Positions 3,901 through 63,844 of a DNA stretch of 64,000 nt are shown piece by piece (positions within the stretch are counted from its first letter, which is position 1; every line of letters starts with the position of its first letter). Made by a program: the position numbers and the translations under genes. The DNA lies in the NCBI RefSeq assembly GCF_052425735.1, contig NC_135766.1:21700001-21764000 (forward strand). Direction: 5' to 3'. The notes under the pieces are model-generated. The model was not told where the DNA came from. It worked only from the letters and a program-made list of their open reading frames with translations, and searched no databases. The stretch comes from Oculina patagonica. Its lineage: Eukaryota.

Positions 3901-6900
3901 TAGCCAAATATTTTCCTTCTGGCCCTCCCAGTCAGCCAATAAATGCATTATAGCGTTATTAACGTCATGTACCTGGGTCATTCCACAGTATTATGGACAA
4001 AAAAAAATTGAAAAATCAAATTTGTTTAACTTACTCAAATTCCAGACAAATTGATAGCATATTAGCTAGAATTTATGAAAATGATAACTATTTTTTGTCG
4101 TCAATTGTTGTTTGTGCATAAATTATCATTTATTACCATTAATAGTGATAATTGCTGTTGCGGAGGGGAAAGTAATATGTTTTACTGGTAAAAAATAGAA
4201 AACAGGAATTTTGCTGAGATGGTATTGGACTCAAACTACTTAAGACAAAGTAACTTTAACATTACCCAAAATTGATATTTCTCTCAGCGTGTCAGCAGGA
4301 GACAACAATCTGTATGCTGCTTTCCCCTCCGCAACATTTTAAGGCCTAAAAGTTTAGTTTGTCAGCTTGTAATTAACAAACTCAACTTCATGTTTTCACA
4401 TCTTCTGATTTTGGGCTAAGGTTAAGTTTTATTACTGTCAAAGAGATTTTATGTTTTAAGCTGTAGTTAAGAGGAATGATTAAATACCGTTGCGGAGGGG
4501 AAATACTGTTGCGGAGGGGAAATTTTGTTGCGGAGGGGAATTCTGTTGTGGAAACAAAATCTTTTTTGAGAGAGATTTAATTAACAACGGTGTTCACATT
4601 GGGAAGAGAAAGGATTTTCTCACCAAAGTTTACAACATTACAGTATCTTACAGGTGCATATGCACAGGTGCATCTTACAGGTGCATATGCACAGCTTACG
4701 TGCATTCAACACGTAAGCTGTATTTTATGGGCCAGTTTAGTTAAGGCAATTGCCCTTTTATGTACAGTTTTGGAATTATCATGAGCAGGAACATACCAGG
4801 CTCACATCTGTTTTTGTTTTCCAGAAGTGTTCAATTATCTATGGGTGTTTGCTGTTTAACATTGACACTGCTTTGTTACATGTATGAATCAGTTGTATTT
4901 TCATACCTGTTTTTTGACTTTACTTAGTAAAATTCATAGAAAGTACATGTTAACCCATAACTGCTAAAAATTGTTTAAAGGCTGAAGATATTTAAGTGTC
5001 ATTGTGAAATTGTAATAATAATTATCAAAATGTTAGGGTTATCACCATCTTTTAACTGCTCATTTATTGTGAATACTGAAAAGGACAAATTTTCCCCTCT
5101 GCAACTTCCCCTCCGCAACAGCAAACAATGTTCTAAATTCTGGATCACTGGAAAAACACTAAACATTTGAGTTTCTTTTTGTAATCTTTCTAATAAACAT
5201 ATAATGAGGAAAATCAAAAACCTATTAGGCACAGAAAAGAATTTCAGAATTCAGAGAATTTTGAGAATGAAATTTAAAAACAAAAAACACCATTTTCTCT
5301 GTTCCCCTCCGCAACAGCCCTTTTTTGAGGCTCTGCGATCTAAATAATGTATTTTCGAAAAAAGCAGGGCGGCAGCAAAGAAAGCTTTCTTGAAGACTTA
5401 AACCCTGAATAAATAATCAGAGAAGATAAATGCCTATTAAACCACAACAATAAAAGTGTCTCCAATCCCCTCCGCAACAGACGGAATACTGTGGAATGAC
5501 CCACCTTCAGTTGATAAACCTGATGTCATCTCATCCGTATTCCTAGCAGCTTGTTCTCTGACAAGAAACAGCTGTACAAGTGCCTCAATGGAACTGAGTT
5601 GACCTTCCTGATCTTCCATTTCTTGACTACTGTCTTGACTCTCATGGCAGGGGGAGGTACGCAGCTGAACCAGGGAGGCAATGTTTTGTTTACTGTCTTC
5701 CACAAGATTAATTAAAAGTTCCAAGCTCTGGAAAAGAAAACAACCAACATTGAACTGCTTACTTCTCCATAATGTTACTGAAATATGGCAATTCAGTTGA
5801 CTCTCTGTTAAGTGGGCACCACTAGCTATAAGGCTCAGTTTCTGGGATGTGTCCATTTACTATACCATAGCCACTTAGGAGATCAGGTATTTGCTTACAG
5901 GAGGTGCTGCTCCCAAGTGTCTGTTTACATGAGATGCTCGCTTACTTGAAGTGTCTTGATAGAGATGTTCATATACAGCAAGTATCAACTAATGGGTGTG
6001 GTCTTCCTACTCAGTGAGATGTCTGACTCTTCCTTCAGTTGACTACTAAAACTAATAATATTCAGCTAGAGCTTTGTTCTTTCCTCATGTCTTAACTGCT
6101 TTGAAACTTAAGGTATTTTTCCATTGAATATTAGCTATGGGCAGTAGCAGTTTTATCAATAAAAAATTCAGACAGAGATAAATCAGGGTTGGAAACGTCT
6201 TTCAACATTAATTCTCAATTTTGGTCACAATGCTTTTACACCAGCCTGTTAGAGAGTGTGTGTTTACTTTGTTATTGCTTCTAGCTGTAGTACACATAAT
6301 TATAATGCAAACTTACCAGAACAAGCAAATCAAACCTCTTGCTCTCTGTGACAAACTGTGGTAACTAAGTGGAAATTGTAGAATTTGTTTTAATTACACT
6401 GGGTTGCAAATGTACATGATATCGAAAATGCAAAAGAACATAATGCATTTTACAAAAGATCCAGAGTTTAAACTTCTGAAGCTGGGTTTTCAAATGCTCC
6501 CCAAAAAATTAAGGGCTGGGGGCATTTTACTGACAAATAATTATGAGGCCTAAACAGCTGAGTAAGTGGGTTACATAATAATTATGGTAATTAATTGTTT
6601 TGTATCAATTTTTTGTAACTTTAAGAGAAATCTTTGTCCATGTTATTTGTACTAACCTAGTAAAATAATAAAGATGGTAAATTTTAAGCTTGGTAATAAA
6701 TAATGAAGATGAAGTGTTCAACATGACTCGAGCATGGGACAAAGAAAAAATCTGAGTCCCAGACGGGAATCGAACCCATGGCCTCCCAGATACCGGTTGG
6801 GTGCTCTAACCAACTGAGCTACGAGAGACTCGTTGTGTGCTGGGCCATTTTACTAGGTTGATAAGTGACACGCGTCCTGCATACTGCTAGGATCAGCAAT

Positions 6901-9900
6901 GTCGAATTCATCAAGTTTGTAGTAAATAATAAAGATGGTAAATTTTAAGCTCGGTAATAAATAATGAAGATGAAGGCCCAGCTCACAACGAGTCTCTCGT
7001 AGCTCAGTTGGTTAGAGCGCCCAACCGGTATCTGGGAGGCCATGGGTTCGATTCCCGTCGGGGACTCAGAATTTTTCTTTGTCCCATGCTTCTGTCACGT
7101 TGTACTAACCTGTAGGACAGTCAGCAGAAGTGACGAGAGAAAACCATCCTGCTGACCAACGCTTGAGCTGCCTGCCTCTGCACAATAAAAACAATTAAAA
7201 AAATGTAAAAAGTGAGGTCTGCATTCGAGCAAAGTGGCTCATCAGGCCGGAGCAAGCTTATCCCCTTTTCTGTAGTAGTATTACAGTCAAAACCATTAAA
7301 GCATGAACGCCTAAAATTATTTCTGGAATGTTTATTGTTTTGCAACCAATCAGATGCGAGACGTAACCATAACAAACCGCAAGAGTAATTGAATTGACAA
7401 TTGAATTGAAAATTAAGAGAGCAGAATTTTACGTCTTTTAGTATTTATTACAAAAACTGCTCAATTCAGCAAGATATCATTCTGGCATACAGTTGAATCC
7501 TGGTAACTCGAACGTTCAAGGGAAATCAAAAAAGGTTCGAGTTAGCAGTAGTTCGAGTTATCGAGGTTAAAATTAGTAACAAATGACCTGGAGGGGAATC
7601 AAAAAAGGTTCCAGTTAGCAGGAGGTTCGAGTTATTGACTTGAGGGTTCCAGTTATCGGTATTCAACTGTAGTTATCCGTTGCTTATGCATAAGCTCTGA
7701 AATAGAAAAAGAATGACAATTTCAGTATTTGTTAATGGTAGAATCAAGGATTTATCGTGGAAAAAAAGCCAACTCGTTGTTTCGTGACTGATCCAAACCT
7801 TTCAGCTAATTACTCTTGTGGTTCTCGCATCTGATTGGTCGCTAATAAACCTTCCAGAAATAATTTTACGTGTTCGTGCTTTTATGGTTTTGCCTGTAAG
7901 AGAGTAGGAGTATTTCTACTCCTCCACTAGATGGGATGCTAGTCCACTGCAGGGTTTTCCTCTGGCATTTAATTCACTGATACCACTTTATACACCTGGA
8001 CAGAAAGAGAGGCACTATGAGAGTAAAGTGTCTCACCCAAGAAGATAATGCAGTAACCCTGGGAGGGGCTCCGACCCTGACCTCTTGATCTGGAGTTCAG
8101 CACGCACTGACCTTTAGGTTACCTTTGCTCCCACACTCACAAATAAATTTACCAGACGACAACTGTACAAAATGATTTCTAGTTAGCAGGCTAGTGGAAA
8201 TGTGCCCATATCAAAACAAATATATTGCAGTAAAAACCCACATGCAAGAACCTAAGAATTAAAGAACCTTCTGACAAAAATTTGCTTTTTAATACCCCAA
8301 AATATAAGAACCTGTTTAGCCAAACAAATTCCAACAGGTTCTTATATGTGGGGTTTAACTATCTAATTTATTTATTTTTTTACCAAAAACCAAAAAGGTG
8401 ATGTTATATACAGTACTGTATCATTGATCAATTAATGTTGTTGGACTTTTGGCAACATGGGAACATTAATAAATATTTATAGTGATAAACAGGCCAGATT
8501 TAATTCTATTTTCTGATAATCAACAACAATGTCTACTCTGTAGAAATTAAGAACCTAATTAAGAACCTACTTAGCCTAAACTGTCAATAACTACCCAATA
8601 ATACAAAACCTTTTTTGAGGGGGGCGTAAGAGTTTGCGGTGATGCGGTTTTGCGTATATTTTTCGTGTGGTTTTGCGGTAATTTTTATTTTAACCTGCGG
8701 TATTGCGGTTTTACAAGACTACGCGGTGTGCGGTAATTACAAATTTTAGGTCGCGGTAGTCGGTGAGAAAACTGTCTGCGGTAATATGATTCTCTTACGT
8801 TTCCACTGGATCCTTTCACATTCGGTTGTTTTGCTTCAGTTAAACAAGCTTGAGCCAAGTGTTTTGTTTTACAGCGTATCAGCTTACACAATCAGGGTTC
8901 GTTATTAAGCAAACTTGCCCTGTGGCTTGTAATTGCAGCCTCTTCCAGTTAATATTTGATGTGTTTAACTGTTTTATCCAATGATACGTTGACTTGATGA
9001 CATTCCAGGCCAGATCTTCGGCTCAGATCCAGTCTTATCTACCGTTGTTGGTCATTTGAAATTGCGGTTTCGGCTTTTTGGTAAAATTTGATGCGGTTTG
9101 CGGTTTTGTAGCGTATTTCTGTGCGGTTTTGTGGTTTTCGGACCCCCCTTACGTCCCCCTCTTTTTTGCCAAGCTCTGAAAAAAGTAGGTTCTTACATGC
9201 TGGATTTTACTGTACCAACAACATGACTTACCAAAGTTGTGAGTCAGATTCAAGAAAACTTTAAGAATGCTAAAGAAACAGTCTTCAAATGCCCTGTCTG
9301 GTTTTTTCTTGGTTTGCTTTGAAGAAATGCCATTGTTGAGTGTGTTCAGACACAACTGCATCAACCTAAAGACAATAATAAAAAGTTAACTCATTGAAGG
9401 GCTACAGCCAAAATGAATCCCGAAAAAAAACTGATCCATATCTTGATACTGTCTTCATTTACCTGACCAGTGAAGTCACAAAGGATCCCTTTTCATATTG
9501 AATCATGTGCTCTTGATTAGCAGAATTTTGGATTGTAACCTGCAAAGTATTTTTATTAATTAAATATTAACATGATATTTTTCTAATTAAGGTCACTGTC
9601 CCGAAATAAAACTGAACATAGATTTTTAACCAAACTTTGCCTACTGGTTTATTACTTTAAGGGAACTTAAATTTTGAAATGAAAAAGGGGGGTCACCAGA
9701 TTCGTTTAGGAGCAGGAAGACCTTGTATATTCCATATATTTCCTTTAAAAGTCCTATGCGAGTACTAGCAAAGTACACAGTTTTAGCGATAATTTATTTT
9801 TCAAACACAAGAAATGAACTGTTTTCATTTTACAGAAAGAATTTAATCACTACACCCAAAATATAAGAAAAAACTGATAGGTCACCAGACTTGTTTATGA

Positions 9901-12900
9901 AAAAGCGACAATTTACTTCTCTCGCGGACTAAGCCACATAGAAAAAAGCCGCCATTTTGTTTATGTGCGCGCGCTAATTACGCGTAAAATTCTGCGCAGT
10001 AAGGATGCGCAATGCAATACAGGGCAATGACCTTATGTACAAAATAAATACTGGAAGTCAAGCACAGCATCACAGCTCCAGGCTTACAAATGACTACAAC
10101 AAGCTCAACAAATGTTCCATGTACTCACGTTCTCCAGTAGTCTCATACATCTTGTCATCTTTTTCAGCTTTGCTGTTGATACACCCTCATGTAATCTGGC
10201 ATCAGCATATCTCGTCAGAAGGTTTTCAATAGTCTGAATTGCTAAGCAAGACATGAAACTTTGCTATTAGAAATGTGCACAACAGAATTCTATTGCTCTC
10301 AAGAATCCAGTAAACTTTTGAAAATGATCCCTGGGGTTAAAATCATTTAATTTACATGTATAACCTAAACTTACCCCATCAGTCAGTCCGTCAGTACATG
10401 CAGTCGGTCAGACAGACAGTCAGTCAGTCACTCAGTCAGTCAATCAAAAGAAATTATTTATTTAGCAAATAAATTGTTTTATGCACCTTATGAACAATGA
10501 ATCTGTTCGGGCTTCCGGTCAGGTGATAGTAATAAGACCTTGCAACATTACCCTTCGTGATATATACACTGTTAGATTCAAACGTCTCGTTTTGTTCTTT
10601 AGTATTATTTTTACATCGTTCACACGCGTGACATTGTGTTACTTTGTTTATCATGTGATTGCTATCAGTTTACATCATTCTAAGTTTATTACACAATCAC
10701 CTCGTGTTTTGATCTTTCTACGATTACGTTCTTTCTATTCACGTTTTTGTCCTGATTTGTCTTCGCTCCGCCGGATCAGAGGAATATTTGTAAGTTTTGT
10801 TCTTTCAGTGTTTTTTCAAATCGTTTATTAGTTTCTTATATTGTTGTAATCTATTGCTTTTCAGTCGCACCATATTCATCGATGATTGTTTCTATTGTCT
10901 GATGCATTCAAATTACCTCTATTCAATAAAGTAAGCGTTAAATGGAACAAGACTCTGAACTGAACGATTTATTGCTTACATACACTGTAAGGCAGAGTTG
11001 GGCTATCTTGAGCCTCTTGGTATCGAAGCATTCAAGACGAAATCAACATTTCCCTCCCACCCTGCTTCCCATAGGACAAGATTTATATACATGTGTTCAG
11101 GTATCCCTTCGCCTTTGCTGGGAACAGTTTCATTAATTTAGAATAAGCTTCATTTGCATTTTGTTACTAAAAATAAACAGCCACCTTGGTGGCCAAAAGA
11201 TGGCAGGTGTCACGTCAAATCTCTTCCCAGCAAACCGAGCTCAACCAAGGCAATGAGTGCAGAATATGATTATTTGCACTGGGTAATGCATAAGGGAGCA
11301 TAAATGTTATTTACTGAGGGTGACACTTAACAGTTATAAAACTAACAAACTTGTGACTCTCTTAAAAATAACTAGGTGCACATTGATTTTGAAAACTATT
11401 TGACTGTGTTAACTGTTGCCTCATAAAGGGACAATCTCCATCCCGACAAAGGATGTGTTACAACATAAATTAATTAATTTCATCAAAGTAAATATAACTT
11501 TTGGTATCAACCTATGTCCATAATATGATCCAGTCCCCGCAGTACTCTTATCTCCTCTTTAAACCACTCTCCAGTCCTCTGGGACGTCAAAGACAGCATT
11601 GACTCACAAACTAGAGATGCCGGCTGTGGTAAAAAAAAAAATAGATCAATGTTAGAATGATCAAAAAAATTCAACAAGAAAAAAACAACAAGAAAAAGCA
11701 ATTAGTCTTTGATAATAGAGTGATGAATGATTTGAACATAGTCTCAGATAAATTAATAAGCGCAAAATGCAGCAAAACTTTGCTCAATTGGTAAGTCTAA
11801 AATTTTTTTGAATTGGAAACAGATTTGAAGTAACTGTAAATATTTATACATTTTTAACTTCAATATTGCTAATTATTACACAAGCAAACATAATATTATG
11901 GCACTTTGAGCAGCAGTGCTCTTGAAATTGATTTTCAATAATCAATCAGTTTAATTAGTTAATTATTACTTTTTTAATTTTTAAATACAACATAATCAAC
12001 AATAATAATATTATTATTGATGTATTAATTAACAAAACTTACATTGATGTCATCATCGCCTGCAGCTAGTAGTTCATCAGATCCATGTTGTTTTTCTAGT
12101 AATGTCCTATTAATCATAATGTATCATATTTATTTTAATAACAGGTACCGGTAAATAATTTTGCATTGAAATAAACTTATTTTGTGCAAATTTTGTTGTG
12201 GTTTAAATATTTGCTGTTGGATTGAAATTTGTTGAACCAGTTTGATTTTTTGATTTTTCCCCTTGATTTCAGGTTATGATATAATTAATTACAAATTTAA
12301 CATAATATGACGCAACCTACTTAATAGGAAAACTAAATCAGAATATACTGCTTTCAACAAACTGTCAGACAAAGGCTAATTTAAACCACAACACATTGTT
12401 TGAGAAGAAAAATAAGCGATAGGAAAGTTGAACGACGTTTCGATGACGCCATGTCATCATTATCAAGTTAAAATTATAATACGGAGTTCATGCTTATATA
12501 GTGATCTAGGGTGTGATAATATATTAGCATATTAAGATTTTAAATAAACAGTTTAGCACACACAGAATCTGATTGCGTGTTAAGTTACGGCTTTATGTTT
12601 CTAATAAAGAGCATTTCGTAAATTAAACAGTCCAACTTCGTGCGGCATTTCTTTAAAACAGAAAACTGGTCTTGTACATTGTAGACTTGCAGCTAGTGGT
12701 CTTCTTTTAAGTGTCGGCCAATCGCAGAATATTTATGTTCAGCGATGCGTTGAAAAAGATGTCGGGATGTGAACCCAACATAATCTGCATCACACAGATT
12801 ACATGCGAATTTGAAGACAACGCAATGCTGATTTATAAGGGGAGGCTTGGCTTCTACCACTTTGATGTCATCCATAATTTTCTTGCTTGTAAACACAGGC

Positions 12901-63543: not shown

Positions 63544-63644
63544 CTTGAGAAAATGAAAAACAAAGAAATTTAAACGAGTAATTCACAAAGTAAGCTACGT
63601 TTTTGTTTTTTGTTTTCATGAAAAAAAAAACACAATAAATTTGT

Positions 63645-63844
63645 TGTAAATAATAAAGATGGTAAATTTTAAGCTCGGTAATAAATAATGAAGATGAAGT
63701 ATTCAACATGACACGAGCGTGGGACAAAGAAAAATTCTGAGTCCCCGACGGGAATCGAACCCATGGCCTCCCAGATACCGGTTGGGCGCTCTAACCAACT
63801 GAGCTACGAGAGACTCGTTGTGAGCTGGGCCATTTTACTAGGTT
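63645..63844 (-). mobile_element. Second copy of the tRNA-containing retroposon
   Basis: Nearly identical to 6659-6859 (AATAAAGATGGTAAATTTTAAGC…GGGAATCGAACCCATGGCCTCCCAGATACC…CATTTTACTAGGTT). Confidence 0.85.

Follow-up and report, generated by a model that had tools for sequence, protein, structure and literature searches.

Insertion of a non-coding retroposon across a splice donor of the WAPL gene in Oculina patagonica

WAPL exons and the interrupted intron

The window, meaning the whole stretch of DNA that was analyzed (64,000 nt of Oculina patagonica, NCBI RefSeq assembly GCF_052425735.1, contig NC_135766.1, positions 21,700,001 to 21,764,000, forward strand), carries coding exons of WAPL on its minus strand, one of which is bordered at its donor by a repetitive insert (Table 1). 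This 68-nt exon (exon 13 in the first-pass annotation) follows an acceptor (...ttattgtgcAG|) and ends at a donor at 7110|7109; together with its downstream flank, it is unique in the genome. The intron behind it is now 745 nt long (453 + 292 nt), and the pre-insertion intron of 292 nt corresponds to 6365-6646 plus 10 intron bases from one copy of a repeat.

Table 1. Features of the WAPL locus around the insert, in window coordinates
Feature	Position	Strand	Remarks
68-nt WAPL coding exon	7110..7177	-	Located with coral WAPL proteins P0005 and P0008 (tblastn); spliced translation continuous
Target-site duplication, copy 1 (AGGTTAGTACAA)	7100..7111	-	Last two exon bases and intron +1 to +10; donor CAG|GTTAGT
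Inverted, 5'-truncated element piece	6975..7099	-	Antisense tRNA-like module (7067-6992 on the + strand)
Single direct unit, ~261 bp, in gene sense	6715..6974	-	tRNA-like module 6829-6754, directly followed by a T6 run
Partial tandem repeat and constant 3' tail (...CCATCTTTATTATTTTACT)	6659..6714	-	
Target-site duplication, copy 2	6647..6658	-	TAG|GTTAGTACAA; AG 6658-6657, GT 6656-6655; candidate zero-length-exon site
Remainder of the original intron	6365..6646	-	Unique in the genome
48-nt micro-exon	6317..6364	-	True downstream partner of the donor of the 68-nt exon
WAPL exon after the micro-exon	5505..5727	-	Donor carries a separate DNA-transposon insertion (3971-5506)

In six transcript-derived coral WAPL proteins (P0151-P0156), the 68-nt exon is joined to the next at TVLQ|LPQF, as it is in three further WAPLs, two NCBI gene models among them, with Stylophora P0157 and the NCBI model P0158 included; the micro-exon is skipped in one Stylophora model or isoform (P0159). 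Continuing past the 68-nt exon into the intron gives VSTT and then TGA, a stop after five codons, and therefore the working donor has to be the first. From protein conservation and this in-frame stop, we infer that the exon-side copy, CAG|GTTAGT, has this role, as the first-pass annotation had proposed; the donor sequence was also called strong there, which overstates it, since U at +3 makes it good and not consensus-strong. When proteins were searched with the open frame surrounding the 68-nt exon, to find fragments that read through into the intron, there was no match, and no contigs from an RNA run (X15; another coral, ~92% identical in a neighboring exon) fell on the 68-nt exon.

The insert and its repeat family

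The insert is 441 bp long (6659-7099) and bounded by exact 12-bp repeats of TTGTACTAACCT (AGGTTAGTACAA on the minus strand), whereas chance would give ~0.04 exact 12-mer pairs in 1.2 kb, a figure that does not require a position at the ends of an element. The upstream copy lies on the donor of the 68-nt exon, as expected for the 12-bp duplication over this donor that was first proposed. The order within the insert is 125 nt inverted, one unit, and 56 nt. In a 131-nt inverted repeat (93% complementarity), the inverted piece is the left arm, and the predicted RNA hairpin (~130 bp, near-perfect, −282.6 kcal/mol, z = −27) begins 8 nt past the donor; its folding is predicted to take out ~390 nt and to leave both splice sites no more than ~65 nt apart. 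The hairpin might affect splicing or undergo editing, a point against a neutral reading of the insertion. At the other end, the 56-nt tail gives a pyrimidine tract and a branch-like motif (UUUAC) ~22 nt upstream of the AG.

The insert belongs to an abundant, non-coding family with a 261-bp unit that contains a tRNA look-alike (ARAGORN and Rfam tRNA, 39 to 41 bits). An exact 17-mer of the family tail occurs 2,070 times in the genome and 0 times in the reversed control, and the direct part of the insert (query positions 125-437, window 6975-6663) is 96 to 98% identical to other copies (at least 176 matches scored). Copies elsewhere have a constant 3' end (terminus ...TTTAC(TA)), variable 5' ends (5' truncation), 1.2 to 5 tandem units, inverted 5' pieces or head-to-head junctions, and duplications of 10 to 15 bp. 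The reading of the insert as a retroposon insertion is upheld, with the 12-mers as its target-site duplication.

This copy structure matches the published signature of Penelope-like elements and their non-autonomous passengers (PMC8557442), as its copies are likewise truncated at the 5' end, the partial tandems have a short extension, a 5'-truncated copy lies inverted next to them, and the duplications are variable (PMC8557442). To judge by these features of the sequence, the insertion scars of the family are those of Penelope-type retroposition. Unlike Penelope-like elements, however, the unit has a tRNA look-alike, no hammerhead or other ribozyme was found in it in Rfam at E values up to 1, and no reverse-transcriptase partner is linked here. 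A classical tRNA-derived short interspersed element (SINE) was considered and rejected: an A/B-box tRNA-related module is present, but it is internal to the tandem unit with the T6 run directly behind it, and the 261-bp unit does not have the SINE arrangement of a 5' head with Pol III transcription of the whole element. The resemblance of the downstream flank to the element (CATGG(G)ACAAAGA) was not above that of shuffled sequences.

Both 12-mers could in principle be older than the insertion, as a tandem donor duplication, or the arrangement could be an assembly error. We found no point that supports either, and we regard both as scarcely credible. The repeats adjoin the ends of the element exactly, as they do at ~20 other copies of the family, and the orthologues in Acropora digitifera (L043) and Stylophora pistillata (L044) have a single donor at the same exon border with no such element adjoining. 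Against an assembly error, the 3' junction (6658/6659) is crossed by DNA contigs from two independent runs of other labeled coral taxa (X6 and X9) at >99.5% identity. No joint that skips the 453 nt, as an empty allele would have, was present among the joints listed for public runs. At the nucleotide level, the introns of A. digitifera and S. pistillata are too diverged to serve as an empty site, with alignments not above shuffled controls; identity to this WAPL is at most 75% for all coral WAPLs among those listed. A partial 5' duplicate of WAPL ~39 kb upstream was rejected as a paralogous empty site, as it ends at window position ~10377 without the 68-nt exon. A metagenome scan for the exon end with the 12-mer gave one match, on a contig that has no relation to the coral locus, and this match was set aside as chance.

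Donor targeting and the neighboring DNA transposon

WAPL carries a second insertion of this kind. A DNA transposon (3971-5506) whose terminal inverted repeats are perfect over 19 bp and whose duplication, AGG(T), is 3 to 4 bp long lies on the donor of exon 5727-5505, which is the next but one after the donor hit by the retroposon. Two WAPL donors have therefore been struck by unrelated elements with the same outcome, as stated at first pass: both are duplicated, with the element between the copies. The second case differs in that it involves a cut-and-paste element, and the +3 to +6 positions of the working donor come from the element itself. A double donor hit in one gene under random insertion can be put at a few per cent, which is a rough estimate and not a computed value. 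This second hit counts against a purely neutral-chance account of the locus.

The two hits in one gene are what speaks for a preference of the element, or of the transposons of this genome generally, for donor-like targets, by which donors would be struck above chance. We consider such a preference very unlikely. When the 529-Mb genome was searched for a donor-like motif, AGGT[A/G/T]AGT (AGGTDAGT), no more than 8 nt from the family tail, only this copy was found (n = 1), against ~0.7 to 1.9 expected by chance (i.e., about one). At ~22 other copies, the curated duplications are AT-rich and none is donor-like; most share microhomology with the tail at their start (TA, TAC, or AC). A donor preference is thus disfavored for this family, and the suggested insertion bias toward donors is not upheld.

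Splicing of the enlarged intron

The best explanation is that this is probably a tolerated, effectively neutral insertion, and splicing was most likely left unharmed by it. A non-coding retroposon would have entered a 292-nt WAPL intron via target-primed reverse transcription, with a staggered cut across the exon/intron border whose repair would have duplicated 12 bp. The exon-side donor, intact from −3 to +10, would have stayed in use, and the 441-nt insert with the second repeat copy would amount to extra intron. Survival of the insertion is plausibly explained by the duplication itself, which on the sequence keeps the exon-side donor and allows the insert and one repeat to be removed together as a GT...AG unit.

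At the second copy, TAG|GTTAGTACAA is preceded by 15 pyrimidines in 20 positions (three neighboring real acceptors have 13 to 16 in 20), and its donor sequence is the same as that of the first copy from −2 to +10. The duplicated donor and the adjoining acceptor-like sequence, TAG|GTTAGT behind a pyrimidine-rich tract, are therefore as the first-pass annotation described them. It had also derived the second site from the 3' end of the element, which is right for the T-rich tail but not for the AG; the tail ends ...TTTAC(TA), and the AG comes from the duplicated target. As the element is oriented in the sense of the gene, its T-rich tail and the duplicated AG|GT behind it have the appearance of an acceptor joined directly to a donor.

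The 453-nt unit could come out separately, before or after the 292-nt remainder. Removal of the insert plus one duplication copy as an intron of its own, by two-step excision in either order, is possible, though we hold it only tentatively. If it does occur, donor insertions of this type would be self-healing, and a recursive-type site would be born in one mutational step. The more specific proposal, in which the second copy acts as a recursive site, with the exon spliced to the AG|GT at 6657/6656, the donor regenerated and then joined to the micro-exon, appears unlikely; under the recursive reading, a nested order is also possible, with 292 nt out first and then 453 nt. The candidate acceptor with its pyrimidine tract and UUUAC motif, the identical donor copy, and the predicted hairpin that draws both sites together are consistent with recursive use. 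The mRNA, however, is unchanged either way, and there is therefore nothing for selection to act on.

Further points against recursive use come from comparison with known ratchet points. In Drosophila, these lie in introns of 11 to 133 kb, from which 2.6 to 64 kb is removed per step, are conserved, and are backed by junction and lariat reads (10.1101/006163). The WAPL site is like the zero-nucleotide-exon ratchet points of Drosophila in having a pyrimidine tract and an AG fused to a GT donor. Unlike them, it is a site predicted from the sequence and lies in a 745-nt intron (453 + 292 nt, as opposed to an intron of at least 11 kb with kilobase segments), it is the product of a recent insertion, and the orthologues in A. 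digitifera and S. pistillata have no site of this type. On the length of the intron, the youth of the insertion, and the unconserved site, the ratchet-like label does not hold as a class assignment.

To return to the tolerated insertion, all three splicing routes (in one step, or with the 453-nt unit out before or after the remainder) would yield the same mRNA, and therefore no function is implied; the case gives no indication of a new splicing device or of an element that seeks donors. Its value is as a clean case of staggered-cut insertion onto a splice donor without gene breakage, and it could be used in teaching or, in a minigene, to study competition between identical donors.

In introners and other transposon-derived introns, the target-site duplication supplies a splice site (PMC11282704). 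The WAPL insertion is like introner elements in that the element and a single copy of the duplication together make up a full GT...AG unit, in which the duplication provides one splice signal (PMC11282704). It is unlike them in that no exon sequence has been turned into a new intron, nor has the family produced such introns repeatedly: the intron position is old and common to Acropora and Stylophora, and this copy is the sole donor-type junction of its family in the genome.

Insertion site and repeat family

In gene sense (minus strand), the exon ending in ...CCTACAG|GTTAGTACAA is followed by a 441-nt insert, a repeated AGGTTAGTACAA and unique intron. Exact 12-mers were found at both insert ends (repeat finder), which bears out the 12-bp target-site duplication over a donor of WAPL, the cohesin-release gene, described in the first-pass annotation. 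Within the insert, the two arms of a 131-nt inverted repeat are 93% complementary, a 52-nt stretch recurs in direct orientation 261 nt away (both repeat finder), and two tRNA-like modules lie in opposite orientation (ARAGORN, Rfam); no ribozyme family matched it (Rfam, E up to 1). It opens with 125 inverted nt, continues with a single unit and closes with a partial repeat of 56 nt that ends in the tail.

A search of the species' own 529-Mb assembly returned at least 176 scored matches to the insert among 2,005 candidates, and the exact tail 17-mer CCATCTTTATTATTTAC occurred 2,070 times in the genome (reversed control, 0). Family copies comprise 1.2 to about 5 tandem units of 261 bp, with a constant 3′ end (...TTTATTATTTAC(TA)), variable 5′ ends, frequently an inverted 5′-truncated piece and, in ~22 independent copies, flanking duplications of 10 to 15 bp. 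The same structure has been described for Penelope-like elements and their nonautonomous relatives (PMC8557442), which the window copy resembles in build (inverted piece, unit, partial repeat with tail). By these structural hallmarks, the element is classed as a Penelope-type, tRNA-bearing retroposon. A textbook Pol III SINE was rejected for the family, as the tRNA-like module is internal to the unit with a T6 run directly after it. This run, immediately 3′ of the module, is found at 6745-6755 and family-wide; it should stop Pol III, so the RNA that is copied is unlikely to be a plain Pol III product spanning the whole unit. Coral metatranscriptome contigs pile up on the element (6701-7117, 90 to 99% identity), and other corals thus carry, and may transcribe, the family or close relatives. 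A second, shorter family copy lies at the far window end, and the intron upstream of the exon holds a separate repeat (at least 40 genomic copies, 85 to 89% identity).

Features of the WAPL insertion site and related repeats (window coordinates)
Feature	Position	Length	Strand	Basis
WAPL domain hit	14900-15085			WAPL Pfam model
Separate repeat	7486-7676	~185 bp		
Exon ending at first 12-mer	7177-7110	68 nt	minus	tblastn with P0005
First 12-mer	7100-7111	12 bp		repeat finder
Insert	7099-6659	441 nt	minus	
Second 12-mer	6647-6658	12 bp		repeat finder
Interrupted intron	7109-6365	745 nt	minus	exon map
Micro-exon, next downstream	6364-6317	48 nt	minus	tblastn with P0005
Exon after micro-exon	5727-5505		minus	tblastn with P0005
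Cut-and-paste insertion	3971-5506			
Second, shorter family copy	63637-63844			

WAPL exons and the second splice site

Coral WAPL proteins were retrieved by library search with the WAPL-domain exon, and exons were mapped with the Acropora digitifera protein P0005; their spliced translation is unbroken and agrees with the family. The resulting interrupted intron measured 292 nt before insertion. TVLQ is joined to LPQF in six transcript-assembled coral WAPLs (P0151-P0156) and three more, including two NCBI models. The micro-exon is absent from one annotated Stylophora pistillata isoform (P0159) and so may be alternative in corals. Translation continued past the 68-nt exon reads VSTT in the intron before it meets a stop, so the conserved protein requires the first donor.

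Judged by sequence, the second site (TAG|GTTAGT) joins a reasonable acceptor directly to a donor: its tract has 15/20 pyrimidines, versus 13 to 16/20 at the three neighbouring real acceptors. The insert is predicted to fold into a hairpin of ~130 bp (−282.6 kcal/mol, z = −27; minus strand, window 6630-7130) which begins at donor position +8 and stops 57 nt short of that site. Given such a site and hairpin, removal of the intron in two steps, in either order, is chemically plausible; every splicing route yields the same mRNA. The site had been called ratchet-like. Ratchet points in the literature occupy introns of 11 to 133 kb, take out no less than 2.6 kb at each step and show conservation (10.1101/006163), whereas none of these Drosophila-type features (long introns, kilobase steps, conservation) holds in this 745-nt intron, and a working recursive site at 6657/6656 is unsupported. 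The single RNA run covered consisted of contigs from another coral. The near-perfect predicted hairpin is also a possible RNA-editing substrate or influence on micro-exon inclusion.

Donor hits and their survival

Curated family duplications are AT-rich and mostly start with TA, TAC or AC, suggesting that priming relies on microhomology to the tail; none is donor-like. Across the genome, a single tail, that of the window copy, is followed within up to 8 nt by AGGT[A/G/T]AGT. With a local motif frequency of 1.0e-4 per position and 800 to 2,070 tails, 0.7 to 1.9 sites are expected genome-wide, so there is no donor-motif enrichment behind family tails, and the proposed insertion bias toward donors is unsupported.

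The other insertion on a WAPL donor, a DNA transposon in the annotation, is of the cut-and-paste type: its 19-bp inverted ends are perfect, and its 3- to 4-bp duplication, AGG(T), lies on the donor of exon 5727-5505. By rough, uncomputed estimate (~5 insertion offsets per donor copying the donor core, roughly 2e5 donors, 5e8 bases), a donor core would be duplicated by about 0.2% of insertions at random; single hits are therefore expected to be frequent across the genome, and a pair within one gene is unusual but was noticed after the fact. For the retroposon insertion, the preferred reading is a neutral one: it would have survived through duplication of the donor.

Orthologues and age of the insertion

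At the same exon border, the orthologues have a single donor (CAG|GTCAGT in A. digitifera, CAG|GTAAAG in S. pistillata) with no such element adjoining, and neither intron aligned to the interrupted one above shuffles. No nucleotide-level empty site was found in these orthologues or the partial WAPL duplicate, which ends at window ~10377; the reading of the 12-mers as a duplication made by insertion thus rests on their exact fit to the element ends and on like scars at ~20 other copies. The direct part of the insert is 96 to 98% identical to other family copies, which, with identical 12-mers, points to a young insertion. No joint skipping the insert occurred among the joints listed, a minority of all joints. 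In runs labelled as two other coral taxa, DNA contigs match the downstream flank at >99.5% identity, cross 6658/6659 and extend 32 nt into the element; the insertion is thus not private to one colony, and an assembly error was rejected, as these independent-run contigs span the 3′ junction.

The 5′ part of WAPL has a partial segmental duplicate, likewise oriented, ~39 kb upstream (window 10377-22416 versus G000:C9:21662712-21684226, 81 to 98% identity), including an open WAPL-domain exon (59.4 bits, versus 59.7 for the original). The orthologous intron at the S. pistillata locus holds a tandem array with a unit of ~100 bp (L044:13044-13530).
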